64,000 nt of DNA from Klebsormidium nitens. Its lineage: Eukaryota > Plantae > Klebsormidiophyceae. Where the stretch lies: positions 124,001 through 188,000 of the forward strand of contig DF237026.1 of the NCBI GenBank assembly GCA_000708835.1, written 5' to 3'. Positions 10,725-64,000 of the stretch are shown here, piece after piece (the first letter of the stretch is position 1; every line of letters starts with the position of its first letter). The notes below the pieces were generated by a model. That model was given only the letters and a program-made list of their open reading frames with translations, had not been told where the DNA came from and made no database searches. Position numbers and translations under genes: made by a program.

Positions 10725-13700
10725 ATGGCGCGCTTTTCCGGCGTCCCTTTCTTGCTCGTCCTGCTGGCGTGCGTCGCCGCGAGCTCTGCCCACCGGGCCA
10801 AGCAGACCGCCTTTGTGGCTGGGCTCACCAACAAGACTGTGGCGTCGACTGTCCCGTCCAACGGCGACGTTACTCCGTACGGATGCTTTGTCGTTCCGCG
10901 GACGGTTGGGAAGCTGCGTCGGGACAACGTTCTGGTCAGCAACTGGAACAAAGCGTCCAATCTGCAAGGCGAGTGACTGCTGTTTCAATATCGCTTTCTT
11001 GTTTCAATATTTTCTTTTACTATTGTTTATCTTCTTGTTATTTTCTTTCATGATATGTATAAGTGCCGATTGCCGATCAAGGCTGACATGGTAGCCTTTG
11101 AAGTCCACGTTAAATTGCCTGATTGTTGCACTTGCTCAATGGAGCTTGGTTGATATGTTTTCTCTGCCATATTTTTGAGAAAGGACCGCCCGTGTCTGCT
11201 GCAACTGTGATCGTCAACAGTGCTTGATTGACTATGTGCTTCCCCTTACGAACGCAGCACCTTTCCGTTTGTGTCTGGCAGAATGATTAAGGGGATGTTT
11301 AGAATGTCTGACTGTATCAGAATGAGGAATGTCAGAGCACTCAAAGACTGAATAGGATCCATTTCATGAGAGAATTTCGACCACCTCTCGCTAATGGTCC
11401 TTCCAATTCGCGGAATCGATTGAGTCTTTTCAAGAGTATTATAATTGGTTGAGATCCCGCACGCGTTTTGGACTACAGCAGATTGATGTTAACCGCTCGA
11501 TCAGACCCTTTCCAGCAATGAAAGTAAATTTCGAAAACTGATCAACCCGCCTATCTCTATGCAGAACTCTGCCAGGTGTTATTCAAAAAGTCTGTATATT
11601 TCTTGGCCTTCATTCTATCGCCGTTCCTCGATTGTAAGGTCGCCAGATGTTTTGGAATCAGCCCCTTCCAACACCTTTGAGTTGCGAACAGTCTCTATCA
11701 CGACTAGTCTAGCCTTTGCTCTTCCATTTGAGTTCCTGGTCAATCATTGCCCATAACACTCGCTTCGCTTTTGTGTCAGGTACTGGCCGTACCATTGTGC
11801 AAATCACCCCTGGCGGGCAGCAAACCCTCTTCGCCCAGATCAACGCCGCGGAGCCCGTCGGGCTTTCCACCGCTCTAGTTGTTCTCCAGAGCGGCTGGGT
11901 CATCGTTGGGAATACGCCCACAACGGACGGCACTTCCAACACGATCATGCGAGGTGAGGTCCGGAAAGAGTTTGGAATTTTTGCATTCTTGATGGCTTGC
12001 AGGGTCGTCCTGACGTGAGCTTTTAAAAAGCATTACGATCTAGTGTCAGCTTTGAGCATTCTCCTGACTGACTGCCTTTAGGGTCGACTCGAACTTTCTG
12101 ATTTCAACGTTCCGATCCCATCCAAAGATTTGCATAATCTCCTCAATTGATTGCATGCGATTGATTAAAGACAGCTGTTCTAGTCGTTCCAGTGGTAGCT
12201 CAAAATGCAATCCCAAAGCTGGGGCTGTCTAGACACGTTCGGAACATTTCAATCAGTGTCCTCAATGTGGGCACTTCTGATCACGACAATTCATGGATTT
12301 TTTCCAACAATTGCTGGATTGGAGATTTTTGAACCGATGATGACGCCCGGTTTCTCCCCAGGTTCCATCTTTGTCTTGGACGCTTTTGGCACTGTGCGCG
12401 CGGAGATTAAGAACTCGTTCATCAACGGGCCTTGGGGAGCCACAGTCGCAGTAAGGGGCTGAACCATTTCACCGTTTGAGATTTGTGGTCGGATGATCTA
12501 CAGTACGTACTTTTCGCGCCCTCAGAATGCTTTCCAGCTCCCCTCATTGAGATTCGCATCCCAATCATAGTTCCTTTGTTCCGGTTCCTGAAGTTCGGCG
12601 TTTTCAAACGGAAGAGTACTTTACTTGGTCACGTACCCCATCCCAGAGACTACCGTTACGACATGCAATATTTGTTCAAGCTCTTGAAGATTGCCAAGCT
12701 GCCACCACGCATATGACGCCCAATTGCCGTCCAATCTCACCGTTCCCGTTCCGTTCGCATTCCTGTTTAAGGTTTGCGCTTTTATCCCAGTCCCTTAGTG
12801 AGTACGAACCTACGTTCTCCAAATCCAAGGCCAGCTTTAATTTGCGGTCAACTTATCACTCCATCTTCACAACTACCTTCGAAAAAGTAGTCCGTCCTCA
12901 ATGATGGGTCGCCCCTTCTCATTTCCAGGAGTTCCAATCTGCCAGCATTGCCTACCTTTTCGTGAGCAACGTTGTAGCGCCTGCTAACGGGACGATCGTG
13001 CGCTGGACTCTCACCGACATAATGAGAGCCGACGACCGCTCTAGCCGGCCCCCCCGGTTCACTGACCCAACCATTATCGCGGACAATATCGGCGCGGTTC
13101 TTGACCCGGCGGCTGTGGTCATCGGCCCGGTGGGGCTGGGCTACCGCAACAATCAGCTCTTTGTATCCGGTGAGACCGCGCCACGTGTCATGTTACTGTT
13201 TGCTTGGTTGAATATAGCCGTCAATGATCGGGCCGCGAGACTGCTGCACTGGGCTTCTCTCCGTTTTCGATCGAGGCGTGCCACGTGGCACGTTCCTATC
13301 CGTCTGATTCTGACATCCTCTGTACACAATCACTGATCATCATGGGCTGGGTTCTGCCCCGCTGATTTTTTGCCCCGCATTCAGGTGGAGGATTGCAATA
13401 TGTCTCAGATTCGAGTCACCGGTCAAAGTCCTCTGTACGTACGGCATGATTCAAGCGTTTTAAAGAATATGACCGTTCTGCGTTTGAGGTGCCACACCAA
13501 GCATGAAAAACGATCCTTGCTAATTAACCAGCATGCTCAAACCTCGATTCGTACCCTACGCGCAGATGAGGTCCACAACCGGGTTCTCCACTTCAATAAC
13601 GTCATCTTCCGCGGTAACCCCGACACCAACCCGGCTGTCGTGACCTCCGACAACGCTCTTCAGCAGCCCATCGGCCTCACCCTCACCCCCAATCGTGAGC

Positions 13701-15121
13701 TTCTGCACACGTCGTTCGTCTTGGCTGACGTCAGCACTGTCCTCGGAAGGTTTCAGTTCAATTTAGCCATCTATCTGCACATGGTCTTCGTCCTGGCTGA
13801 CATCATCACTGTCCAGAGAAACTTTTACGGAAATTGTATTTGAAGTTAGCTTCTAGAACGAGGCCGGATACCTTTGATACTCGGGATATCGTGACGACTT
13901 GATAACCGGGTTTTCCCGGTCATTCTGAACTCTCGACAGGAACATGGGACTGAAAAAGTCACTGCTGTTGCGTTTCTTCCTGAGCCCAACCGTTCCTTCT
14001 GTCCAGTCGGTTTGTACTTTTCGGATCTGCGATCATTGATGCTGAGCATCTTAGAGTCTATTACCCGGGCTTGAATGAAGCACCTACTCAAACGGATTCG
14101 TCGCAAAGTAAGTGCGCTTCTAGAACAGGCTGCCCGGAATATTCGAATTGAGTCATAATTTATTTCGAAATTGTTACAAGCTGGAACATTCGACACCTTA
14201 CTCATTTCGTAAGCCTTTGCAGAAAACCAAGCACTGATCGTTAACAACCTGAACGGGAACCTGGTTGACTTCACTATCCCGGGTAAGCGCCCAAGCCTTC
14301 AGACCGTTTGATTTCCTTCGATCCTAGTTTCAAGCGAGCTGTCTGGCCGTTTCTGAACCACCAGATGACCGATGCTTTAAAGGAGCCTGTCGTATTCTTA
14401 CGGTGACTCTAATGCTTTACTGTGGCCACCTTGCCTGACGTCTCAATCCGTTGAAATACTTAACGCCAGTAAGCTTATGATGATGCCCGTTCGTCTTCCC
14501 CGAACCCGAAACCCTTTGGTCGAGCAGCGAAAGGCAATCTCATGCTGTTCAAATCTGTTTGCGTGAGGTCACAATCTACTCTGTTACATGGCTTACTATA
14601 TAAAGAGACCTGTGCACTTCGTCGGATGTGAAACAGTGTCAAATTAGAGAGGCGTTCTTGAATCCTTTATCTACTACCCCAAGCCAGAAATGCTCCGAGC
14701 GTTCTACATGGAACGTCCCTATTTACAGCAGGCCACGGAAACAACGATCAATCTTCAGATAACTTTAAAACCGCCTCCAACAAAAACTCCGGCACAAGAC
14801 CATTTGCGCCTTTAAAACTGGCCCCGGATGTAAGATCACTGTTGACTGGATTTCCCCCTTTTCCAAATCGGCGCTGATCTTATTCCTCCGTTCCTGTACT
14901 GAAGTGGCCTTAAAAGACTCTCGATTCACCGTTAAGAAGACAAGAGACACAAACCGATACCTTTGTTATGCGCAGCCCCAGGCACTCAGCTGGCGACTGT
15001 GACCGTGTCCAACTTTGGCGCGGGAAGTCTGTTCGGTCTCGCTGCCACGATCAATCAGAATGGCCAGAAGAAGGTGTACTTTGTCAACGACGGAGATAAC
15101 ACGCTCAACGTGCTGGAGTGA
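10725..15121 (+). CDS. Secreted bacterial-type beta-propeller (NHL-like) protein, 360 aa, tandem copy 2
   Basis: Exons 10725-10968, 11780-11953, 12362-12450, 12929-13169, 13566-13694, 14223-14282 and 14976-15121 total 1083 nt in frame. Signal peptide MARFSGVPFLLVLLACVAASSA. Motifs STVPSNGDVTPYG, VLVSNWN..NLQGTGRTIV, INGPW, DPAAVVIGPVG and LFGLAA...VYFVNDGDNTLNVL. Confidence 0.88.
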
Positions 15122-44579: not shown

Positions 44580-46692
44580 ATGGCTTTGGCAGGCTGCAGC
44601 CGTGCAACCCTCCCTGCTTTCAGGGCGGTCGCTTTTTCCCCTGCCAGCAGCCACGCTCCCAGGAGCGACAATGCGGCATTCAGCCCCATCTCCCATAGTT
44701 CTTCCTTTGTCGCTCCTCTTAGGGTTAGGTCTGTGCCCTCTGCTCGCAGCAGACGGCGGCCTGATGGGGGGAGGGCTGTGCCATCTGTGGTAGCGGTGGC
44801 AATGCAGGATACAGAGGGGGGTGATGGTCCCAAGATTTATCCTCCCGGCCTGGGCAGATACGAGTCGATGATCATCTTGAGGCCTGACATCACGGAGGAG
44901 GAACGGCAAGCGTGAGTACCTAATGATTCTTGTCTTAGCTTATGTTTATTACAATGTGGACCGTTATCATTGAGGAACGGTTTTCCAAAACTGGTTGGTT
45001 CGTCCTTGTGTCTGTGTATGGGTCCAGCGAATTTTGGTGATGCTTTCTAGGTGGTTCCTATCATAACACATCCGGGGCGCGTGAAAGTTCCTCTGTTTGG
45101 ACTGCTTTTCTGGCATTGCAGAGCGTGTGGTGCGTCCAACGGCACGTATCGGTCAGCATTCCGGGTCTGAGCGGCAGTGTAACAAAGGGCCGATGCTGCA
45201 TTTAGTACTTGATTTGAATCTCCTGATGCAAAGGGTTGAGGAACCGGCTTATGTGTGTATGCATAGAGTTTCAAGCTGTCACATGCTTTGTTTGCTGTGT
45301 ATGTTTTCTGCAGCATGTGATCAGCGGTAATGGCAGATGTAGGTGTTGTTCTCGTGACCACTTTACAGGAGCCGCTGTTTTACCTGCTCAAATTTGTCTG
45401 TGCTTTCGTTTTCTTTTGGCAGACTCTATTGGCTCCTAACTTTCAGTCATCCTTTTTTCGGAAGTTTTCTGTCAAGTTGCTCCATCGAGAGATGGAAAGA
45501 AATGCAGCGAGCTAAATAGGGTTTCATCTTTTAAGCCAGCAAAGCCTCACAAATAATAATGCGGAGTCAGTCAGTTCCTTTCGTTGAAGGGTGCTTTTAG
45601 CGATTTCTGAGGGCCAGATTCGGTGGCCGCTCAGAAGCTGATGCACTGCTAATATGCTAGTTCGATTGCTGATCATGGCTCGCTCTAAAAGGGCGCAGCA
45701 AGAAGAAGTGGTTGCATACATGGCTTTGAAGGTATGCCTTTCGCTCGTAGGTTTATTTATGGATATTACCCCCCTTTTGTCATGGGCTGGACTATTCACT
45801 CTTTGGTCGTACTTTTGAGAAATTCGCTAGTCCAATATTCAATCCAATATTCAAGATTCGTCAAGCCAGCTGCTTCGAACTGCCTGACAGACGTCTTTGG
45901 AAGTTGGCTCCGTTGTCTGCAGAGATCTTTGCAATCCTTGGTCGTCCTGGATCGAGCAATCCTTGCTCGCCCTGGATGAGCACGTTGTCTCCTCACCTCT
46001 TGAACGATATACATGTGGAGTAGCTTGGATAGCTTGCACTGGGCGCCCCCCAACAACATTCCTGCTGCTGAATCTTGTGAACTCAATATTTTGTTGTTCA
46101 AGTTTGAGGAGCCAACAGACCCAAGGTGCAAAAGGAATCATCAGCAGATGATGTTGCCCTTTGCCCCTTAGAGAGAGGTGATCTGTAGTAGACTGATGTG
46201 TCGCCCCCATTTCAGAAACGATCTTCCGATCACGGCTCTTCACCAGTCACAGTATTCACCTCACCTCCTCAGTGCACGTGGAGCTGCAATGATTCATGCG
46301 CCGATCAGCTAGCTTGCTGCAATGGCAGCATCAAGCCTGGCTTCTTCGCGTCTTGCTTTCATCCCCCGGATTTCCACACTAGGAGTGAATGTTTACCTTG
46401 AGCAAAGCAACTTCTGATGGGTAACTTTCTTGGTTTCAGTTTGAGCGAGCGGTACGAGGAGACTCTTATCGGGACTGGGGCGCTTGACGTGGAGCTGTTT
46501 AACCGGGGGATGCAGCCACTGCAGTACCCAATCAAGAAGAGGAGTACTGCTGGGCTCACAACCAGATACCTCGACGGGTGGTATTTGCTGTTCACATATG
46601 TTACCAAGCCGGAAGCGATCAAGGAGCTCACGAGCCAGTTCAAGTTCGATGACGATGTTATTCGGGCGCTTACGTTCCGGAGGGATATGTAG
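44580..46692 (+). CDS. PRPS6: Plastid 30S ribosomal protein S6 (bS6c) with transit peptide, 194 aa
   Basis: Exons 44580-44911 and 46440-46692 give PPGLGRYESMIILRPDITEEERQALSERYEETL...VELFNRGMQPLQYPIKK...YLDGWYLLFTY...DDDVIR, the plant plastid S6 signature, after a Ser/Ala/Arg-rich N-terminus. Confidence 0.95.
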
Positions 46693-49518: not shown

Positions 49519-52500
49519 TTATGACGAATTCCGCTCGGATTTTGGGCCATCTAAATAAGGCTTCGCGAGCACCGCCAGAACCAGCGTCCCCAGCGTCAGC
49601 ACCGTGATGCACTCCCACGGAATGAACTGCGAGAGGGGGATGCGCAGCGCCACCGAGTATGACCACAGCGACCCCCCCAAAAACGGCCCCGCCGCGCGCG
49701 CAAACGCGCCGATCGAGTGGCTGAACCCCGTAACCGCACCCATGTTTGAACTATCCGTCGAATTGCTGACGAGGACCATCGCCCCCGTGAACCCCATGCA
49801 CGCCGCCACGTTCTTTTCGATCAGCAGGCCCGCGACCGCCCACCACTGCCACGTGGCATTCGACGTCAGCAGCGACGTCAGCGGCATGAGGAGCGTCGCA
49901 GGGAGGTAGAGTAGGGTCCCGAGCGCGAAGCACGCACGCGCAGAGGGCGGGTTGAGCTTGAGAAAAACTAGGGTGAAGAGGAAAAGGACGGCGCCGGTAA
50001 GGCCCCCCAGGAGGCCGATGGTGGAAGCCGCGTAGCCGAGGCCGCCGCTCGCAGGGGACGCCGCGCCGAAGATGGGGAAGAGCTCGTCTGAAAGAGGACA
50101 ATTAAGGGTGTCATGGTTAAGGACTTCGGACAAAGGAGAATTGAATGGCTTGTCCGAAGGGAGGGGGGGAGAAAGGTGGCGCACCGAAAATAGGGAACAG
50201 CTCGTCTGCAAGACGGGGGGACGCTAATGTTAGAGACTATACATCGAAAGCCAAGAACGGGGAAGGGCTTGTTTGGAACGGTGGGGAATGGTGGCTTTAC
50301 CAACGACACTGACAGTCGACTGAGGGTCTGAAGACTTCAACTTGCAAGGTAGTCGTCTATAAGGAGCAAGGGAAGAAGCCAGTTCTTGAACTGCTGAGAA
50401 TCCAGCCTGCCGAAGCTTCGCGATGCGACTCTGTCTCTTACAGGACAGAGTGGCCAATTTGACTCGGGAAGCACTTTGAAGCAGTTTGAAGCAGCACTCC
50501 TGTTACGTCAGCATTTCAACTTGGGAAGCAGCCCATCAGTCATTCTCTCTGCTCTGCCCTTCTAACGTCAACCGGCAATTCCCTGTTGTACCGATGTCGA
50601 CTCGCATACACCTCGAATCTGTTTCTGAGAACCAAGCGTCACCAGACAAAGCAAGACCCGCAGGCAACCGAACCGCATAAGCTGCCACTACCGTTCAGTC
50701 ACCGTCGAAAGACAGAAGCTGCCAAAAGAGATTACTTCACCCTCACCTCCGATGATGTGAATGAAAGCAGTCATCCCATACGTCCCAGAAGCAATCCACA
50801 CGTCGGGGTCCTGCCAGTAGAACCGGTCCTTCGTGGCTGCCGCCCCGCCTTTGATTGAACTTGAAGCCCCGACCTTGTCGGGACCCGATTCTAGATCCGG
50901 TAGCTTCTCATACCGAACGCCGTCGACTTTCGTCCTCCCCTTTGCTGCGCCCTTCCCGTTTCCTATTCCTGTGAGCAAAACTCCCAGTTTCAGCTCGTCA
51001 TGCTTTCCATCATTTGCTAGGCTATCCGTCTTCCCTCGCCCACTCACGGACGGCTCAGCCGCTTCCTCTACGGTTCCTGCAAGCGCGTTTTCCTCCAGTC
51101 TAGTTCCCCTCGTCGCTGCCCCCCCGCTTTCCACCGCTCTCCTCTCCGTAGTAGTGTCAAAGTCCCCACTGAGCATCCCATGCTCGCCTCTTGACACCAG
51201 CTCCACTCCGTTCGCCCCACCGTTCACCTGAGCCACGATTCTAGCTACGGCGGATTCGCTGCTTCTTCCCACTTTGCTTTTACCGCTTGAACGAAGCTTG
51301 CTTTCCAGAGGTTCTAACAGAAACCCCCTCTCCTCGTCCCCCTCCGACCTTGCTCTAAAATCCTCTAAGGAGGCCTCAAGTTCACCAGACTGCCCTTCGC
51401 TAACAGACACACTCCCGGAACCCTTAGCCGGTTTTGTCTCGACCAGCTCAAACGTCTCGTCCTCAATCTTCGCAAACCCAGGTTCCTTAACGAGGGTCTC
51501 CCGCAGGAAAAACGTCGCGACCGCAGCGACGCCAGAGAAGAACGCGGCTCCAGCGCACGGGAGAATGAACGGGTACGTTTTCAAAACCGCTGGGCACTTT
51601 TCTATTCCGTACTGCTGACAAGGGCGTGCCCCCACGCCCCCAATGACTTGCCCCGCAATCGTACCGATGCCCCACCCGAGGCTCAGCACCGCAAACCCCT
51701 GCCGCTGGTTCGTTTTGTCACACAACTCCCCCAGGGTCGACTTGGTCACCGTGATAACCCCGTTCAGTAACCCGCCCACTAACCTCACGAGACACGCCAT
51801 CGTGTAGCTGCCGGACAGTCCGAAGAGGAGAGCGGACACGGCTGCGACGACGTTCCCAGAAAAGAGGACGGGTTTGCGCCCGGTGCGGTCCGAAACGGAG
51901 CCCCAGAAGAGGGAGGTGCAGAACTGGGCGAAGGGGAAGAGGGATGCGAGGAACCCGGCATAGCGGCCGACGAGGTGGGGGTTGTGCTCGGCGACCCCAA
52001 AGTCTGAAAAACAAAGAGTCAAACTTTAGCTTCCCATTTGAATGGACCACGAAATTGTGAAACAAGGGGTACGCTTCCAGTTGAACTGCACCTCAAGATC
52101 TGGAGTTGCGCTCTCCCACTTGCTCGAAGTTAGATTGACAATCACAACGTGGAGCAAGGTCAGCAACCCAAAATTCTGGACAAGGGAACCTTCCGCTAAC
52201 AAAAGGAGCGACGAAGTGGTGATTGTGGCACAGTTTTCTACTCTGTTCTTGCTCACTGGAAGGCCAGAATCTGCGAGGTCGGTACTTTCGGGGTGGTGTG
52301 GGCTTTGTCAACCAGATTGCGGAATCTAACGAGGAAGGATTGCTCAAAAATCAACAGAGGGTTTTCTTGCCTTTGTCGAAGTTTGAGAAATGGAACATTC
52401 TCCTCTGCAAAAAGTCCATCTCAAACAAGAAGATCCTCTTCACCAATGCCAGAAGTCTCAAGAATCGGGAAGGGCATATGGGCAACACTTTGAAACCACT

Positions 52501-54025: not shown

Positions 54026-57000
54026 ATGGCGGGCGTTCCTGCGCCGCGGCCCAAGCCGGAGCACCTCCTGCTCAAATGGGCCGGCACGGTCTTGGAAAAG
54101 TCTGAGGATGAGTGGACCGACGTTGACGCGTTCAGAGATGGGAGGCTGCTGCTAGAGTTGCTTGATCGCTTGTGGCTCGGGGGGAGTTCTAGCAATCAGA
54201 CAGACAGCGATACCATTTTAGAAGCAGACATTCCCGGATCCAAGGTGGACACAATCTTTCAGGATGAAGGAGGAGGGTTCCAAGGTGGGGTCAGGATAAG
54301 CAGGGAAGCACAGCCTGAGCTGACACTGTGCGTGTCTCCAAAGACTCTGGCAGCAAAGGGCAAGGCTGCCGGTGTCAATCTGGACGTCTCGACATTGGAG
54401 AAGGTGAAGGAAGGGGATGGCGCGGCGCTCCACGAGACGCTGTTGTCCATGTATCGGCCCTGGATCATGCAGAATGGGCAGAAAGGGGTCAGGCGGGTGT
54501 CTAAGGGGCAGGTTAGTGAGACCGCAAAAGTGAAGAAGACGGCAATTGGGGATGAAAGTGTGGAAGCTAGCAGTGGAGCTTCCGAAGGGGGGAGTGGGCT
54601 GAAGGTAACAGGATCAGAGAAGGAGGATGAGACTCAAGCAGGGGCGGGCGAGAATTCGCTCGGTGGTTCACAAGGCCAAAGTAAGTTGGTGGCGAGGGGG
54701 AAAGAGAAAGTGGGAGCTGGAGCTGCGAACAATCAAAAAGATTCTGAGAGAGCTCCAGAGGCGCTGGAAGGGGCACAAAAAGATGCACCAATGGCAAGAA
54801 AAGAAGAGGAGAGAGCAGAAAACGCGGTGGTTGCGGCGAGGGCAGAAACACTTAGGGGCGGCGCAATAAGTGCTGACATACCTCCGGGGGCGGCAAGTGT
54901 CGCATCGGCAGCCGGTGAGCCAAGCCAACCAGGGAAGAGAGCGAGGGCGAACGTTTTGAAGCAGCTCAACACGAAAGCAAGAGCTGGGTTAGTGGCTGGT
55001 CACATCGAGAAGATTGCTTCACCAACGTCAGCTGGCGAGTTCGTCGGCAGAGCTGGGGACAGGATTCAGAGTGGGGTGTCTCCAGCTTTGGTTGAAAGTG
55101 ATGGGGTTCAGGCTGCAGATCTGGTTAGGGAGGGGGCAGACGCAACCAGCGAGGAAGAGAAGCAGGATGTCGCTGTCACGACGAAAGGGAGCCCCGCAAA
55201 TCCGGAAGTTAAAGATGCAGAAAGCGATGGTGGCTCATCTTCATCGCTGTCGGTCCAGGACAAGAAAGTGATACTCAGCGACAGTGCCAAGTCGGAGACC
55301 CTGAGTGGGTCCGCGACAACGGGGTCAGCGAAACAGACAAGGTTTGAGAAAGCGGCGGAGCCAGACAGAAATGGCGACAGTGGAGACGGCGCCAAGTGGC
55401 GGGCTCCCCTTCCGCCGCGATCAGCGTACAGTGCTTCAGACGGCCAGCTGATGTCGGCACGGGCCTGGCTCGCCGACATCATCGCTGGTGTCAGCGCTGA
55501 TGTCAGCGAACGTCCCAGCCCGCCCGAGTTTGAGAGCGGGGTCGCGCATGTCCGCGCCTGCGAGCTGCTGCTTGACACCAATTCCGACTCCGAGCTGAGG
55601 CGATTCGGAGTTGACGAGCCGGTGTCAATGACTGAGAGGCGGGTGACATTTGTGTATGAGCAGCTGAGGTCGCATGGTGCAAGGGTGTCGAACCTGAGGC
55701 GGCGGAAGAGGTCTAGCGGGGGAGCGATCGACGGGGAAAAGCTAGGGGCGGAGGCAGAGATCGAGTTGGCTGAGACGCTGATGTCAGCGGCCGCGGAGCT
55801 GGGGTTGAGCGTTCCGAGGGCGGTGGAACGGATCAGGTGAGCTACGATATCACTGCTGAAATTTGTCGAGCGTTGAAGGATTTCTTGACTCTCCAGCGAA
55901 GTTGTTGTGTTCTTTCCCTGCAATCGTTACTTCACATTCTTTTGGATTGGATTGAGCGGTTCAGAACGACCATGCAAGAGTTGCCCTGAATGCCATTGGA
56001 CCCTTGAGGACATTGTTGAGAAATCAGGGCAATCCCGTTCTGAAGTCGAGCAACTGCAAAACGTCTTCTGTCAACCACCTTTTGGCAACAGAAAGGCAGC
56101 TTCCGACTGCATATAGTCCCTCCTGTCGAAAACTTCACGCCGCTGTCGACTCCGAGGAAAGTCGAGAGCATCCACCCTTACAGCTCTTTCTTCTCTATCT
56201 GACGACGACCTCAAAAGATACCAAAGTCACGCACACGGGTTCCGATGCAACTGTACTACCAATGGGATCTAATGGAGGGCATATTGAATTTCTCACTCGA
56301 CACTCTCTGCTTCATACTGCAGGGAGCTGACTGGTGTGAAAGAACACCCGTACGATTGGGAAGACGCCCTCCAACTGTGGGTCAACGCAGTCCTGGCGGA
56401 TCACCACAGCAGGACACCTGTCAAAGACGCGAAAGCCGACGAAGGGTGAGCTAATGCTCCTGTCCTTTCTGTTTCCTGCTCTTTGAATCTGTCGAGGGCA
56501 TTAACGAAGTGCGGCGCGGGCAAATCCGGGAAACTCTACGTAGATACGAGAGTCGAGTTGAACGGTGAGGCTTTCGAGGACGCCTGATGGAGTAGCTTGG
56601 TCGACAATGACTCGTTCTGAACCCAAGGCTTGACGGAAAGGAAGTGAATCCAGATGTGACGTCATTGCGAGACTTCCAAGAATGTCATCAGGACGATGTC
56701 GTCTCAACATGTTGGGAGTGCCAGTAACTGATTGCCGTCTATCTCGTTTGAAATTTATTTGAAACTCAGCTCTGACAATCATGGGGTCGTGAACCAAGCG
56801 TTTGACGCGTAGATTTCACCTGTATTCCTGAGACGACGGGAGCCTGGAATGCAAACACTCAAATCTCAGGCCCTTGACGGGAGGAAAGGATTGGTAGGCA
56901 GCAGCCTCTCGCCTGTTCCTTGAACCGCATGCAGTATCAAATGATATTGATTCCCAACCTTTTGATTCTCGAACCCGGTCCAGAAAGTGACGAGAAAGAA

Positions 57001-60000
57001 CCGCAACGGTCTGCCTCTTATTTCGAGTCGTCAGAGGCGTCCGTCATGAATCTCCATCCTCTACCTGACGATGCATTCGCTGGCCAAGACTTCCCTTCTT
57101 GCCGTGCCAGAGTTTTGATGAAACCTCATCCCAGCGAATTCCCCCATGTTTCGCTAGGCTGCTCTGCGTCGACGACCTGTTGCCAAGGAAGTTTTTCCCC
57201 GTTATTCCGGATGTCACCAGCTCGCCTGTCAAACAATCATGTTTCTCCCCGTGCCAGACTGTACGTGGACGTTATTCCAATGTCATTTTACCCTAGAACA
57301 TCAAAACCCTTTAACCCAAACCCTTTTTCCTGCCAGGTTGCTCTGCATCGACGACTTGTTGCCAAGAATATCGTCTCCGCTCATCCCGTACGTTAGTAGC
57401 TCGCCTGTCAAACCTTCATTTACTCCCCTTGCCAGACCGTACGCGGACGTCATTAATCCTCATCTTAGTCCTGGTATTCTCAAAACGTTAACCAAACTCT
57501 TTTCCCGCCAGGCTGCTCTGCATCGACGACTTATTAGTTGACCTCAGCGACGGCCGCGCGCTCGCAGTCCTCCTCCACTCCCTCTCCCCCACGCTCATCG
57601 ATCCACGTGGCATCCCCCTCGACCGCCAGCTGTCACGCTCCGAAACCGCCCACGTCATCGGCTTGATCCAGCACGCCGCCCGCACGATCCGGGTCCCCTT
57701 TCCGCTGACGCCTGCTGACCTCATCTACGGTCACGCTGGCGTCAAGCCCGCCCTCCTCTACTTTCTGGCGGCTATCTTCCGGACCTTCGAGCAGAAAGAG
57801 CCGTTGCTGCCCGTCGTTCGAAAAGTTCCGTCGTCGAAAGGTGCGAAGACGGGGAGCGAGCCTGGAGCTGTCCGTTCCGGCGAGACGATATCCGCAGGCC
57901 CACCTGATTGGATACCGGAACCCCGGAAAACCGAGTCGCCTCATCGAAGAGGATCCTCGGAAATCCCTGATCCGCGCTGGGAAATTGAGGCCCCTGCAGT
58001 TAGCTCGTCTTCTGGGCGACCAGAAAGTGGACGAAGTCAATTGGGAGGTCGCTATTTGTCTTTCGGTCGCCCTGCAAGCAAAGAATCAACCTCGCCCACG
58101 GCCGACATTCCGGTTGAAACAGTTGATTCCGCTCGGAGCACGCAGGACAGCATGAGTGCGGAAACCCCAAGCGGTGGGGTAAAAGACGGGTCCCGGCGAA
58201 GAAGCAGTTCAGTCGAAAAGCGGGCGGGGAGCGCTTCACCGGGCAGCCAAGATGTAGGGGAGACGCCGGCGAAGCAAAATCCCCTCGGCTCCAGAACGAC
58301 GTCAACGCGTTCCTCCAGGACCACGTCAGCAAAACCTTCCAGGTTGACGTCACCCGACTCCTCCCGGCTGACGTCGGCACGCTCTTCCGGACGGTTGGCC
58401 GTCAGTCCGACCATGATCTCTAGCGGCGGGGTGGCGAACCTGGAAAGCGATTTCCAGCCCGGTGCTGACGTCACTGGATTCGTCAGCGCGCTGCCGAGTG
58501 CATCGATGACGTCAGAGGATGCCCGGGCCGTCCGGCAGGCGAATCTGTGGGCGCTGCTGAATCGAGCGGAGGCGAACGCGGCCACCGCCGCGGCGTCGCT
58601 ATCGCTGGTCCGGGAGCGGCTCTCCGAGGAGCTCTCCGCCAGAACCGGGCCGGAACGGAACCCAAACGGATCGCCGACAAGGACCCAGATGGTGAAGAGT
58701 GGGGTGGGAAGAGGGAGCAAAGAGAAAAGCGGGTCGGCACGGATGTCGGCAGAGGTTGGAATGGTGGGAAGGGCAGAGGGAGCGGTTGCGAGGGCCTCTT
58801 CCGCTCCGGTTCCGCTGGCGGAGTTCCGTTTCGAGGGCGGACTGGAGGACGAGGATATGGTGCGCATTGGGGAGCCGAGTGCGGTGGAGCTTGGTTCAGA
58901 GCCGAGCGGAACTAGGATGGGGGGTTTGGAGATGGCGGACCGGGAAAACTTGGCGAATGCCTCAGAGATGAGTTCCGGGCAATTGGGCAGTATGAATGCG
59001 CGAAGTTCGGGCGAAGGAAAAACGGACGTCCGGACAAGGACGAAGAAGTTCTCATTGCGGACGCACCCGTTGGAAAGGTTCGAAGCTGTGGGCAGTGACC
59101 GGTTGGAAACGGTCGGAGGAGCCGCAGCGGGCGAGCGGGGAGCGGACGAGGCGGAAACGGAAACGACGGCGGAATGGACAAAAGCGGAACGAGCTGGAGC
59201 GAACACAGGGTCGCTAAGTTCATCCCAAATAAAAGAAAAGTCTGATGCCTGGGCAAGGGAAAGTAGAGCGAAAGAAAGCGCTGATCTGCCTCGTCTTTCG
59301 CTGGAGTCTCCAAGAGGCAGCGTTTTCAGAGTGCTTGACGCTTTGAAAAGCGCTTCGAGTCCCGTCGAAACCCGCAGCCTCAGTAAAGTAGGTGTTCCGC
59401 GGTTGGATCTTCCGGGGGAGTTCACGAGCCCCGTAAGTTTAAGCCCCCGAACCGAACGGTCCTCGGGGCGAAGCACCGGGCTGAAGTCCTACAGGACACG
59501 TGGCAGTCGTGTGCTCACCGAGCGGTCCGTCGAGGCGCGGCGCAGCCTCGAGGTGCAGTTCCGGCTGCTGGAGGAGCAGAAGGCGGAGTCGGACCGGAAA
59601 CGGAACGAGGGCTCGGAGGTGCGCAAGTCGCTGGAGGAGCGGAGGGCCGCGCTCGTGCGGAGGTCGCAGGAAGGGGTTGCGGGTTTTGCGGGAGGGTTAG
59701 GGGGTTTGGTTAGCGGAAACGAGAGTTTTGCGACCGGGTCTGGAGGTCTAGTGTCCGGAGGCGGCTCGATCCTGCGCGTGTTGTCCGAAAGGCTGAGCCG
59801 GAGCACGGAGGGGAGCGAGGGTGACGTGGCAGAGGCTCGGAGTGACGTCAGCGGGGTGATGACGTCAGAAGCGGCAGACCGGAAGAGTGACGGGAATGGG
59901 GCGACAAGCTACGTTGGGTCAATTGAATTGGCGGTATCAGAGGGCAGAGGATCGAGCCGGGCAAAGAGTGAAGCTCGAAGCGAAGATGCATCGAACGAGA

Positions 60001-63000
60001 ATGACAGAAAATCAGACAAGCGGCGGACTCCGGAGCTGCCACGTGGCATCCTGGATGATGCGGCCCGGGGCTTGGACGTCCGAGCTTCGACGGAGAGTGT
60101 GTCCGAAGCTCGTGCCTCGGAACAGGGCTCTGTACCTCCGCTAAACGTTCCCGCGGGACCTTTAAGGCTTTCCGCCGGTCCGCCGATTGACTCAGCGGAG
60201 CTGCGGGGTAATCCTAGCAATCCAATGAGCGTCCGGGAAAGTTCTAGCCGTCCTGCCGATGCTTTGAGGACTTCAGTTGAGACCGAGCGGAAAGAGATTG
60301 ACTGGGGCAGCCTTGACTCGGACAGCCCCGTCCGGCGGACGGAGTTTCCGTCGGACAGCGAGAGTTCCGGTCGGTTGGGGGGAGGTGCCGGAGCGGAACG
60401 GAACCCTTTCCAGGAGAAAAAGGCGGTCGACTGGGGAACGCTGCTGACCGGGGACGGGCTTGATTTAAGTAGTGACGTTAGCCGGCTGGACGACAGCATG
60501 GAGTCAAGAGGTGGGGCGGGGACGGAGCCGGATTCCGCCGGGGTGGAACCGGACTCCGCGGAGGCCGTCCGGAACGGGGAAGGTTCGGAGGAGCAAGGTG
60601 GCAGCAGCTTGTGGGGTGATGAGGGACACGTGTCGAAATGGGACAGGCGCTGGAGTCCGGAGAGTATGCACGCTGACGTCATGCACTTGGAGGCGGAAGA
60701 GAAGGAAGAGAGGGGTGGAGGGGAGGGGTTGTGGAAAGAATTGGATAATGGTGAGGCTTACTCATTACGTCATTTATCGAGCGGTATGAATTTAGAAGTC
60801 GTGCAAGAAATTGAGGAGTCTCCCGTTTGACGGAAGCCTCTACCTTCTTCGCTGGAAAGAGTACGTTCCCATTCTCCTTTCTCGTCGCCTCAAAAAGAGG
60901 GAAGAGACTCGTTTGGGCTTGTACGAAGAAGCTTTCGTGCACATCAGCTTGCCAGTATTACGTAGACCCTGGAAAGCGCACAATTGTCTCCTTCAGAAAT
61001 TCTTCCGAGCAATTCGTGTACACGCATTCGACGACTGTTTGGATGAGCTTGTCTTTAGATTGAAACCGTGAAAGAAGCGCGCCTTTGATTGCAACAACTT
61101 CTGCGCAACTCTGTCTTGTCCAATGATGCCAAGCGGAACCCAAGCACCGCAAACAGATAACAGCGTATGCATGAAAGGCGTGTACTGGCACGAATATGAA
61201 CCCTTCTGACCGCTCGTCCTCCGCAGGTCTCTCGTCGCACGAGGACGAGAAGGAGAAAGAGAACGAGAACAAGAACGAGAACGAAAACGAAGCCGAACCC
61301 AGCCTTCTTCCCGAGCGCCACTTGCGCAAGCCGCCCAAACCTGTCGCGCTCCACTTGATCGACCGCGACGACAGCGAGAAGCGCGCGCGCATGCAGCGCG
61401 CGCTCGACGAGAAGCGCGCGCATTTTCTTTTGGAGAGGCAGCTCCAGCAGGCCGCGGCCGCGGCCGCGTCGAGCCGCCGGCCGACTGACGACAGCTCCCA
61501 AAACCCCGAAACCCTTTTGGTATCGGATGTTCCTTCCGGGAAGCGGCGATCGAGCGGCTCTTCAGCGGAAGGCGACGGCGGACATCCGGCGGAAGGCGAC
61601 GGCGGACTTCCGGCAAAGGGTGGCGGCGGATCGCGGTCAAAAGGCAACAGCGGCTCGTCAGCACACGTCAGCCGCAGGGGTTCGGGGGTTTTGGACGGTC
61701 CAGCCGACGGCGGCTCGTCCGGAAAACCAAGCCGCCGGGTTTCCGGGTTGTCCGAGGATTCTGAGGACAAAGCGGGCCGCAAGCTCTCGGGGGTCAGTCC
61801 GTTTTACGCGGCGCCCCCCCGAATGTCCAACAAGAAGCTCGTCCGGAATGCGCTGAGCACGGTGTGCCTGGCCGGGGGGGCGCTCAAGCTGGAGAGGGAG
61901 CGCGCGCTTATGGTGAGCTGGCGGAGCGCTTATTTGACGTACGTCGAAGTACATCACACAAAGTTGCTAGAGTCTGATAGATACAGATGGTGCTGTGAGA
62001 GTTGCTTATTGTTGGCGGAGCAGCAAGATGCATTGACGCGGGAGCATGTTAGGGAAAGTTGATCACGGAGGCCCTCGTGGCGTCTCTCTGATCAGATGCC
62101 AAAGCTTCAACTCTGCTGAAGAGAACAGGCGACATAAGGCCCAAGGATCCCAGTCATATGCGATTAACCCTGCAATTGGATGTCAAAAACTTCGCTTGTG
62201 AGCTCGCTTGAACACCCGAGTTACTCCGTTTACACTTCCCCATTTTTGACGTCCTCCTTGATTCGTTATCCGCTTAGTACAACGGCAATGTGTGCGCCTC
62301 GTGCAGGCTCTTGACGCTTTCGACGGCGACAACTTCGTAATCCTATTCAAGGACGACAAAGGGACCAAGTTCAAGGGGTTGTACGTTTTGTCAGCGGATG
62401 GAAAAGAGGTACCCATCTGTCTTCTCCTCCCATGGTTTTTCTCTTTGCGGTCTCGATGCAAGCCGTCCAGTAGTTTCTGTAAGAGATGTAACTAGAATCC
62501 GTATTCAAGTGCGATGAGCACGACCGATGAGCACGACCCTAGTCTATCGTTGCTTTTCTACTGCTACAAGCTTCGCAGTTCTTTCCTACCCTGTTTCGCC
62601 TGATTGCGACCGCCAGCATTCCGGAAAATGGAGTGCTGAGGAGGGGTTTCAAAATCTTTCTTTTCGTCCTCTTTCTTAATTTCTCGGCCGTTATTCGAGG
62701 CAGTAAAACCGTTGAAAACCCAATTTCTTGTCAAATTTTGGCTGCTGCCCGTTGTTCGCCTGTCCTGTCCGGCGCAAAACGATTCCTTCTTTCTCTTTTA
62801 CTCCAGCAACAATCGTTCCCGTTCGCAAAGGTAGCCGGTATCGAGGCGATACCTTTTTTCACCACCGGTTGTAGAAAGAGGTTCAGTCTCTAACGCCAGA
62901 ACCGTACACAACATTCTGGGTCGGGAGCTCACTCCAAAATGAAATAGCCAGTTCGGCGGGAAAGCTCAGTCAGGAACATGCAGCTTTCTGACTACTTTGC

Positions 63001-63179
63001 AGATTGACCGCATCTACGGCTCTGGGCCGGAGAGCCTGCGATCGGACGGTGTTGCTCACTACCTCAAGTACGACTCGGGGGCCAAGGAGTTCAAGCCGCT
63101 GCAGACGCAACAATTCACCACTTCGACGTGCGCAGTGGCGCCGTCGAACAGAGCTCCGGGCAAGCGCCTGAGCAGGTGA
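54026..63179 (+). CDS. CAMSAP/Patronin-like microtubule minus-end protein (CH-like + CAMSAP-CH + low-complexity/coil + C-terminal CKK), ~2045 aa
   Basis: Exons 54026-55836, 56323-56445, 57512-60750, 61227-61912, 62307-62408 and 63003-63179 total 6138 nt in phase. CH motifs EDALQLWVN and DLSDGRALAVLLH. The C-terminus SNKKLVRNALSTVCLAG...NFVILFKD..KFKGLY...IYGSGP....YLKYDSGAKEF matches the CKK consensus (SNK.II.NAL...CLAG, NFLILFRD, GP, YKYNS..K.F). Confidence 0.88.
57130..57535 (+). repeat. Three-copy tandem array (175-179 bp) ending in the acceptor of CAMSAP-like exon 3
   Basis: (C/T)AG|G(C/T)TGCTCTGC.TCGACGAC occurs at 57158, 57337 and 57512 (real). The units also share AGCTCGCCTGTCAAAC and GCCAGAC.GTACG.GGACGT.ATT. 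Confidence 0.9.
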
Positions 63180-64000
63180 TTCGATATGCATAGCAGCACG
63201 CCGCAAGCTAGGAGCGAGGACGCAACGAAGGAGAAGGCATGGCGGCAAGCCAAACAGGATCTGTTGGCAATTCCGGCCAGGCCCGGCTTAGGTAGCTCGA
63301 GCTTTCTGAAATACATTTAGCCCGCCGAGCACCTAAGCCAGACTTGATAAGATAGGTAGGATATGAAGCACTGTGCACGCGCTTGATCTGCATTCGACCA
63401 GATTCTGACCCCGGCTACTACTGATTAATCCAGTCCGGCCTCGGGCCGGGTGCTTGCTTATTTTACCTTATCTCCCTCATACTCCGGGCCACGTAGTATC
63501 CAACGCCAGACGAAATGCATGGAGCTAGGATTGCTTACTCCCTTTCTTGTCTGGCAAACCTTCCAAGCTGACGTTACTTACCTGCATGTCACTGTTGCAA
63601 TCAAGTTGGATATGGGGGACAGAAGGTGAATCAGAATCTGCATTCTCGTCACGGCGTGCCGACAAGTTGGCCTGAAGGTACTTTATAAACCCATGCACGA
63701 GCCCATTGACAATGTCTCACCAGCCCCCCCCCCCGGGGTGTTACTGGAGTTGATCCACAGTAAGGTGATGTTCCGGACCCAACGATATTGGGGTACGCAA
63801 AGTCGATAGTCCGATCGGAACTTATCAGCATGCAAGAAACAGTCTGATCTTCGATCAATGTTGATTCGATCATAGCATGACTGCTTATGCTCCTACAGCT
63901 GTTGGTCAGCACCTGGGACCGTCTACGAGTCTAATACAGGCTTCAACTCAAATTTCCATCTGACATCATCTGGTCTCAGGCTTCAGGCGACGTGACGAAC

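Follow-up and report, generated by a model that had tools for sequence, protein, structure and literature searches.

Gene structure and domain organization

We analyzed a 64,000-nucleotide stretch of the genome of the streptophyte green alga Klebsormidium nitens (contig DF237026.1, assembly GCA_000708835.1, positions 124,001 to 188,000 of the forward strand; hereafter the window, with positions counted from its first letter). On its plus strand, the region 54026-63179 consists of large open frames interrupted by short stop-bearing stretches. These can be joined into one gene of six exons, with GT..AG borders at all five introns (Table 1). An in-frame stop lies three codons before the start ATG at 54026, and the spliced coding sequence of 6,138 nt keeps its frame open over 2,045 codons. 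One mRNA of approximately 6.5 kb encodes a 2,045-aa (amino acid) protein that contains a CAMSAP-type CH domain, a long linker with conserved helical blocks and a CKK domain. As argued below, this is most probably a functional gene that is transcribed and belongs to the CKK-defined CAMSAP/Patronin family. In the searches, in-frame exon pieces were submitted to Pfam, AlphaFold, the protein collections and ESM Atlas, and the spliced protein, its CKK and its CH domain were analyzed in local scripts.

Table 1. Exons and other features of the CH- and CKK-containing gene in the window
Feature	Position	Strand	Content
Exon 1	54026..55836	+	aa 1-603 plus 2 nt; conserved blocks aa 8-55, 99-165, 462-603
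N-terminal CH-like segment	54047..54520	+	aa 8-55 and 99-165, with an unconserved loop between them
Exon 2	56323..56445	+	first CH helix (helix A): HPYDWEDALQLWVNAV, HPYDWEDALQLWVNAVL
179-bp tandem repeat	57152..57532	+	2.2 copies, 77% match; in intron 2, reaching the start of exon 3
Exon 3	57512..60750	+	aa 645-1724; rest of CH at 57512-57791, then a long, mostly disordered region
Exon 4	61227..61912	+	aa 1725-1953; conserved pre-CKK helix KPPKPVALHLIDRDDSEKRARMQRALDEKRAHFLLERQLQ; first CKK third at 61793-61912
Exon 5	62307..62408	+	middle third of CKK
Exon 6	63003..63179	+	last CKK third (to ~63137), short basic tail, TGA stop at 63177-63179

The conserved blocks of exon 1 are separated by a divergent, low-complexity linker, and its donor (AG|GT, phase 2) is kept in position and phase in three orthologous contigs (L001, L002 and L005). 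When exon 3 was compared with the same three contigs by tblastn, conserved blocks were found at about aa 960-1020, 1273-1426 and 1556-1725. The tandem repeat of intron 2 duplicates the acceptor of this intron together with the first ~21 nt of exon 3. As a result, there are two decoy copies of the acceptor, each followed by LLC[IV]DDLL, and transcript contigs use the last copy alone (57512).

Transcripts and splicing

Part of the stretch is contained in 18 public runs from six studies. The ten best runs hold approximately 0.52-0.65 of the sampled words, which is close to the exonic fraction (~0.61). Contigs of four runs from four studies were aligned over 57300-63290, a part that begins downstream of junction 1. 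These Logan contigs are RNA-like, their RNA origin being a guess of the tool. They contained no mismatches, covered exon 3 continuously and skipped exactly 60750/61227, 61912/62307 and 62408/63003, that is, junctions 3-5. In all four runs the loose contig end at 57511 carries the final 30 nt of exon 2, supporting junction 2. Two long contigs, of 6,538 nt in run X6 and 4,802 nt in run X7, connect the CH exon to the complete set of CKK exons and are spliced as predicted. The X6 contig has 2,079 nt upstream of exon 3, corresponding to exon 1, exon 2 and ~145 nt of 5' untranslated region, and continues 143 nt beyond 63290, so that the 3' untranslated region reaches ~63430. Thus, of the five junctions that the preliminary description had proposed for confirmation by RNA, junctions 3-5 are exact and junction 2 is supported, and junction 1 is backed indirectly, by the length of the X6 contig and by a donor and an acceptor that are kept in position and phase at three orthologous loci.

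Both domains therefore reside on one polypeptide and one transcript, as had been predicted, since single X6 and X7 contigs span them and the frame is open. It is next to impossible that the CH exons and the CKK exons are two neighboring genes: a boundary might theoretically be hidden in the long disordered exon 3, but no evidence supporting one was found, the two long contigs join the CH exon to every CKK exon, the frame stays open throughout, and the same arrangement is kept in orthologues.

Unspliced intron-5 sequence was also observed beside the spliced form in runs X1 and X5 (window positions 62395-62957 and 62435-62718). These pieces could represent intron retention or pre-mRNA; retention would truncate the CKK domain after its second third.

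The CKK domain

The CAMSAP_CKK family (PF08683, DUF1781) was matched by three consecutive exons: the end of exon 4 covers profile positions 3-40 (24.5 bits), exon 5 positions 36-73 (22.9 bits) and exon 6 positions 72-117 (30.9 bits). The three matches are colinear and free of insertions or deletions, and together they cover positions 3-117 of the 119 in the profile. When the spliced CKK was compared with uninterrupted CKKs (local phmmer), a single alignment ran across both junctions with up to 104 bits, which confirms the intron phases. End-to-end alignments were obtained with the CKKs of Cyanophora paradoxa (104 bits) and the chlorophyte Tetraselmis striata (102 bits). The domain is compact and C-terminal (aa ~1914-2035), ending about 10 residues before the stop. 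Because it maps to the PF08683 profile without insertions or deletions, the Klebsormidium CKK lacks a large loop insertion of the type present in Naegleria. An alignment to the tagged human chain (HsCKK, 6QUS) showed that the Asn equivalent to N1492 of HsCAMSAP1 is kept (LVRNALS vs IIHNAIS).

The CAMSAP-type CH domain and the N-terminal segment

The CAMSAP-type CH domain lies towards the N-terminus, at aa ~612-738. Within the first 100 residues of exon 3, CAMSAP_CH (PF11971) was detected with 34.4 bits (cutoff 27) over profile positions 13-84 of 85, and the generic CH family (PF00307) was found at the start of this exon with 31.6 bits. Multiple alignment revealed two motifs, PYDxEDALxxWxN and LSDGRAL, that the Klebsormidium protein has in common with the CKK proteins of Cyanophora, chytrids, Hydra, a mite and a choanoflagellate. 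The central claim of the preliminary description, a CAMSAP-type CH domain combined with a complete C-terminal CKK in a green-lineage genome, is thereby borne out by PF11971 in exon 3 and PF08683 in three colinear exons. Weak Pfam matches to wHTH-HSP90_Na-assoc, TRASH_HVO_1752_C and DUF7223 were all under their cutoffs and were dismissed.

An additional CH-like segment had been proposed at the N-terminus (Table 1). Its residues are indeed present, and the parts aa 8-55 and 99-165 are conserved among orthologues; its assignment as a CH domain is weak. The Pfam CH family matched with E = 0.17 (12.5 bits) over profile positions 2-45 alone, about half of the profile. An AlphaFold2 model of the N-terminal 170 aa had low confidence (pLDDT, the predicted local distance difference test, 42.7), with an order of helices compatible with CH. 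In hhalign the segment was in register with the first half of the CAMSAP CH (helices A-C) at a probability of 5%. Feature matches in ESM Atlas linked it to CH clusters (0.87-0.89), which serve as leads only, and a profile search of PDB with the N-terminal 170 aa gave no sequence match except for a chance match to a sigma factor. It is possible that this segment represents a divergent or split CH module.

Orthologous loci and selection

We identified the same gene in related algae. Seven open reading frame (ORF) calls from JGI, Logan and ENA assemblies (P0001-P0007) correspond to its unspliced exons, and five of them (P0003-P0007) stop at the same exon-4 donor. Five contigs (L001-L005) preserve the exon order and the splice sites; all six exons are present in L001 and L005, and L002, L003 and L004 are truncated where their contigs end. 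Identity to the window protein is 89% in exon 2, 64-92% in the CKK exons 5 and 6 (exon 5, 71-92%) and 61-71% in the CH part of exon 3. It is about 31-61%, mostly 40-57%, in exon 1, exon 4 and the linker blocks of exon 3.

Purifying selection acts strongly on both domains. The ratio of nonsynonymous to synonymous substitution rates (dN/dS) was 0.05-0.06 for CKK in comparisons with L001 and L005 (dS 0.84-0.95) and 0.14-0.18 for CH in comparisons with L001, L002 and L005. Such low values imply that the gene is functional.

Other searches for copies of the gene returned little. A degenerate 38-nt pattern over the exon 5/6 junction did not detect the spliced form in JGI metagenome contigs. Word-indexed protein searches returned two exon-3 ORF calls and nothing more for the CH region, and unspliced ORF calls alone for exon 4.

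In L005, an ORF with a reverse-transcriptase zinc-binding domain (zf-RVT, 13677-14420) is located ~1.3 kb downstream of the CAMSAP orthologue; the window has no counterpart at this place.

Distribution and phylogeny of CKK proteins

The exon-6 alignment was the best contiguous probe and was used for an exhaustive profile search, which detected 138 proteins at E <= 0.001, many of them matched at the extreme C-terminus. Names were looked up for 30 of the 138, and 16 carried the name of an organism. Among Archaeplastida, these were Cyanophora paradoxa, Tetraselmis striata and Rhodelphis marinus. The fungi included chytrids (Spizellomyces, Gonapodya, Geranomyces, Phlyctochytrium and Chytridiales sp.) and blastoclads (Blastocladiella, Allomyces and Sorochytrium), and the other carriers were the oomycete Thraustotheca, the choanoflagellate Mylnosiga, Hydra and a mite. 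No land plant occurred among the 30 entries looked up. Several of the chytrid entries at NCBI are automatically named 'Calmodulin-regulated spectrin-associated protein 1'. A word-indexed search with the Tetraselmis CKK retrieved this protein itself and one from the brown alga Scytosiphon alone, and an ESM Atlas search with the same CKK gave no usable match.

Three of the matches (P0012, P0032 and P0093) were false positives, repetitive proteins that match the exon-6 profile in many short stretches. For example, one of 948 aa contains 14 copies of '...NLTTSTCELSPP...'; the cause of these matches is the 'TTSTCA.APS' tail.

In a maximum-likelihood tree of 79 CKKs, the four Klebsormidium-type sequences grouped with Tetraselmis and the metagenome cluster P0131 (ultrafast bootstrap, UFBoot, 99; Shimodaira-Hasegawa-like approximate likelihood ratio test, SH-aLRT, 96), and deeper nodes were not resolved. 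This clade with a chlorophyte points to vertical inheritance within the green lineage rather than to contamination or transfer. It is highly improbable that the gene is a contaminant or was recently transferred from an animal, fungus or protist, even though the family is best known from animals and the window protein itself was not found in protein collections. In addition to the clade, orthologues with the same six exons and introns were present on five other contigs from four samples, runs of four studies that are labeled with two organism names contained 100% identical sequence, and the GC content and intron style of the gene resemble the rest of the window. The gene fits the retention of an ancestral gene, which had been suggested before and for which the placement of its CKK sequence beside that of Tetraselmis speaks.

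To locate CH domains in the relatives, a local profile of the Klebsormidium CH was used. A complete CH in the matching position was detected in Cyanophora (38.7 bits), the choanoflagellate, animals and two chytrids, and none was detected in the CKK proteins of Tetraselmis, Rhodelphis and the oomycete. Pfam alone reported CAMSAP_CH among the relatives in the choanoflagellate only. The occurrence of CH together with CKK in Cyanophora, the choanoflagellate, chytrids and animals shows that this architecture is older than animals. We tentatively propose, as a scenario somewhat short of probable, that the combination is at least as old as the common ancestor of Archaeplastida and opisthokonts, was kept in early streptophytes and was lost only after Klebsormidiophyceae branched off, at about the time when the control of minus ends passed to the plant-specific SPIRAL2. 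If this is true, Klebsormidium, whose protein would also carry a lineage-specific extra CH-like module at the N-terminus, would offer a living intermediate for studying how one minus-end system was replaced by another, unrelated one.

Three additional contigs, from Logan and ENA, contained CKK genes. The one in L006 (387-1307; contig GC 51%) is 52-58% identical to the Klebsormidium CKK in the aligned parts, and those in L007 and L008 7781-8300 (contig GC 62-63%) are 40-49% identical. Their introns sit elsewhere than those of the Klebsormidium gene, and there are thus further uncharacterized algal or protist CKK lineages. The close exon-6 matches P0008 and P0009 are CKK genes with differently placed introns and gave no help in dating the loss.

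Predicted function

Functions of the Klebsormidium protein can be predicted from its family. CKK domains insert like wedges at the intradimer site, between protofilaments, and N1492 of the human protein tunes minus-end selectivity (PMC6868217). By analogy, the Klebsormidium CKK would wedge between two protofilaments at this site, and it is very likely that it binds microtubules. A preference for free minus ends, the most likely behavior on family grounds, is plausible, and the protein would then decorate and stabilize minus ends of non-centrosomal microtubules, with the CH domain and coiled-coil blocks of the linker possibly acting as docking sites for partners.

Several observations weigh against the assignment of this gene to the family or against its predicted role. 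No match to CAMSAP_CC1, the spectrin/spectraplakin-binding region of metazoan-type CAMSAPs, was found in exon 3, and no other Pfam family was matched there at E <= 1. Because CAMSAP_CC1 was not detected, the protein is placed in the CKK-defined family and not in the metazoan CAMSAP1-3/Patronin subfamily. Exact look-up of the exon-1 and exon-3 ORFs of the window in protein collections gave no match, and the reads gave no direct view of junction 1. The minus-end preference itself is extrapolated from the family, in which the Naegleria and Phytophthora CKKs show no such preference and bind the lattice (PMC6868217). The Asn equivalent to N1492 is also present in the Naegleria CKK and is thus non-discriminating. 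In addition, exon 6 is closer to the Naegleria CKK (6quy, 27.7 bits) than to human CAMSAP1 (12.5 bits).

These reports on non-animal CKKs and the exon-6 scores would also suit a CKK-family lattice binder that lacks minus-end preference, as in Naegleria and Phytophthora, and serves as a general microtubule-associated scaffold. We consider this less likely. The CKK part encoded by exon 4 slightly favors mammalian CAMSAP3 (18.8 bits) and CAMSAP1 (15.8 bits) over Naegleria (14.1 bits), an insertion of the loop-4 type is absent from the Klebsormidium CKK, and minus-end preference has been proposed as the ancestral state of CKK (PMC6868217).

Another possibility involves a main role at centrioles, basal bodies or flagella, for example in anchoring or stabilizing minus ends that are not templated by basal bodies, instead of at cortical arrays; the loss of the gene would in that case have accompanied changes in that apparatus. 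All named relatives outside animals belong to organisms with flagellated stages (Cyanophora, Tetraselmis, Rhodelphis, chytrids, blastoclads, the oomycete, the brown alga and the choanoflagellate), although this sample is small and biased, and published work places CAMSAP proteins at ciliary structures in animals. However, the moss Physcomitrella has flagellated sperm and yet is listed without CAMSAP, in a table that gives CAMSAP for human and fly only and is also blank for Arabidopsis (PMC5371999). Moreover, the RNA-like contigs were derived from ordinary cultures in four studies, implying that expression is not confined to zoospores. Such a role therefore appears unlikely, and stabilization of non-centrosomal minus ends remains the preferred prediction.

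Comparison with known systems

The domain organization resembles that of animal CAMSAP1-3, Patronin and PTRN-1 (Nezha), with which the Klebsormidium protein shares the CAMSAP-type CH, a long linker with helical blocks, the C-terminal CKK of equal length and the Asn equivalent to N1492; its size is similar or somewhat larger. It differs in its N-terminus, which is ~460 residues longer and may contain a second, divergent CH-like module, in a much longer linker without detected CAMSAP_CC1, and in the low identity of its CKK to those of animals.

The best full-length CKK match was the Cyanophora paradoxa protein (EukProt EP00741_P003923, P0037), which is also the sole other protein of Archaeplastida with a complete CH in the same position according to the Klebsormidium CH profile. 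However, it has 1,606 aa, contains insertions inside its CH and did not match the N-terminal CH-like segment, and the tree does not place its CKK as sister to that of Klebsormidium. The green-lineage protein of Tetraselmis striata (TSEL_010705, P0022) is the sister of the Klebsormidium CKKs, but it has 1,425 aa and no CH by Pfam or the local profile. The nearest solved structure to the exon-6 part is the Naegleria gruberi CKK (PDB 6QUY / 6QVE), which differs from the Klebsormidium domain by its large loop-4 insertion and has no minus-end preference (PMC6868217).

Similarity to SPIRAL2/TORTIFOLIA1 (SPR2) is limited to the presumed job, the protection of free microtubule minus ends, and the sequences are unrelated. 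SPR2 consists of TOG/HEAT repeats and a p80-katanin-like C-terminal domain (PMC10980349, PMC10756542), and no such family was detected when all exon pieces were searched against Pfam. Plants are described as lacking CAMSAP/Patronin and relying on the unrelated SPIRAL2 (PMC10980349, PMC5839793), and SPR2 has been contrasted with CAMSAP (PMC5839793). A 2019 review considered CAMSAP to be restricted to animals (PMC6678760). The absence of CAMSAP from land plants, on which the preliminary description relied, agrees with two papers, including the table of PMC5371999, and with the names looked up for 30 of the 138 matches of our profile search.

The gene is less novel than that description implied. 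The last eukaryotic common ancestor has been proposed to have had CKK (PMC6868217). CKKs outside animals have already been reported, and the domain also occurs in Tetraselmis, Cyanophora and Rhodelphis; the Klebsormidium gene is thus not a new kind of system. A literature search found no paper that relevantly links CAMSAP with Klebsormidium, algae or Archaeplastida, and an earlier listing of the gene is possible. Its interest is mainly evolutionary, as it adds the lineage that led to plants to the range of an ancient family that was already known. An expressed and constrained gene with CH and CKK in a streptophyte alga narrows the timing of the family loss towards land plants, and together the Klebsormidium, Cyanophora and chytrid proteins show that the two-domain architecture is ancient. 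The gene also supplies a CKK from the plant lineage with which it may be tested whether minus-end recognition is ancestral.

Neighboring genes

Two other features of the window were noted. On the plus strand, the ORF at 44580-44915 has a Ser/Ala/Arg-rich leader and ends with ...GLGRYESMIILRPDITEEERQA; it has no Pfam match and recalls a plastid-targeted ribosomal protein S6, a likeness that is unconfirmed. The upstream neighbor of the CAMSAP-like gene, on the minus strand at 49519-52022, is a gene with at least two exons for a transporter of the Major Facilitator Superfamily (MFS_1, 69 bits and 20.9 bits).

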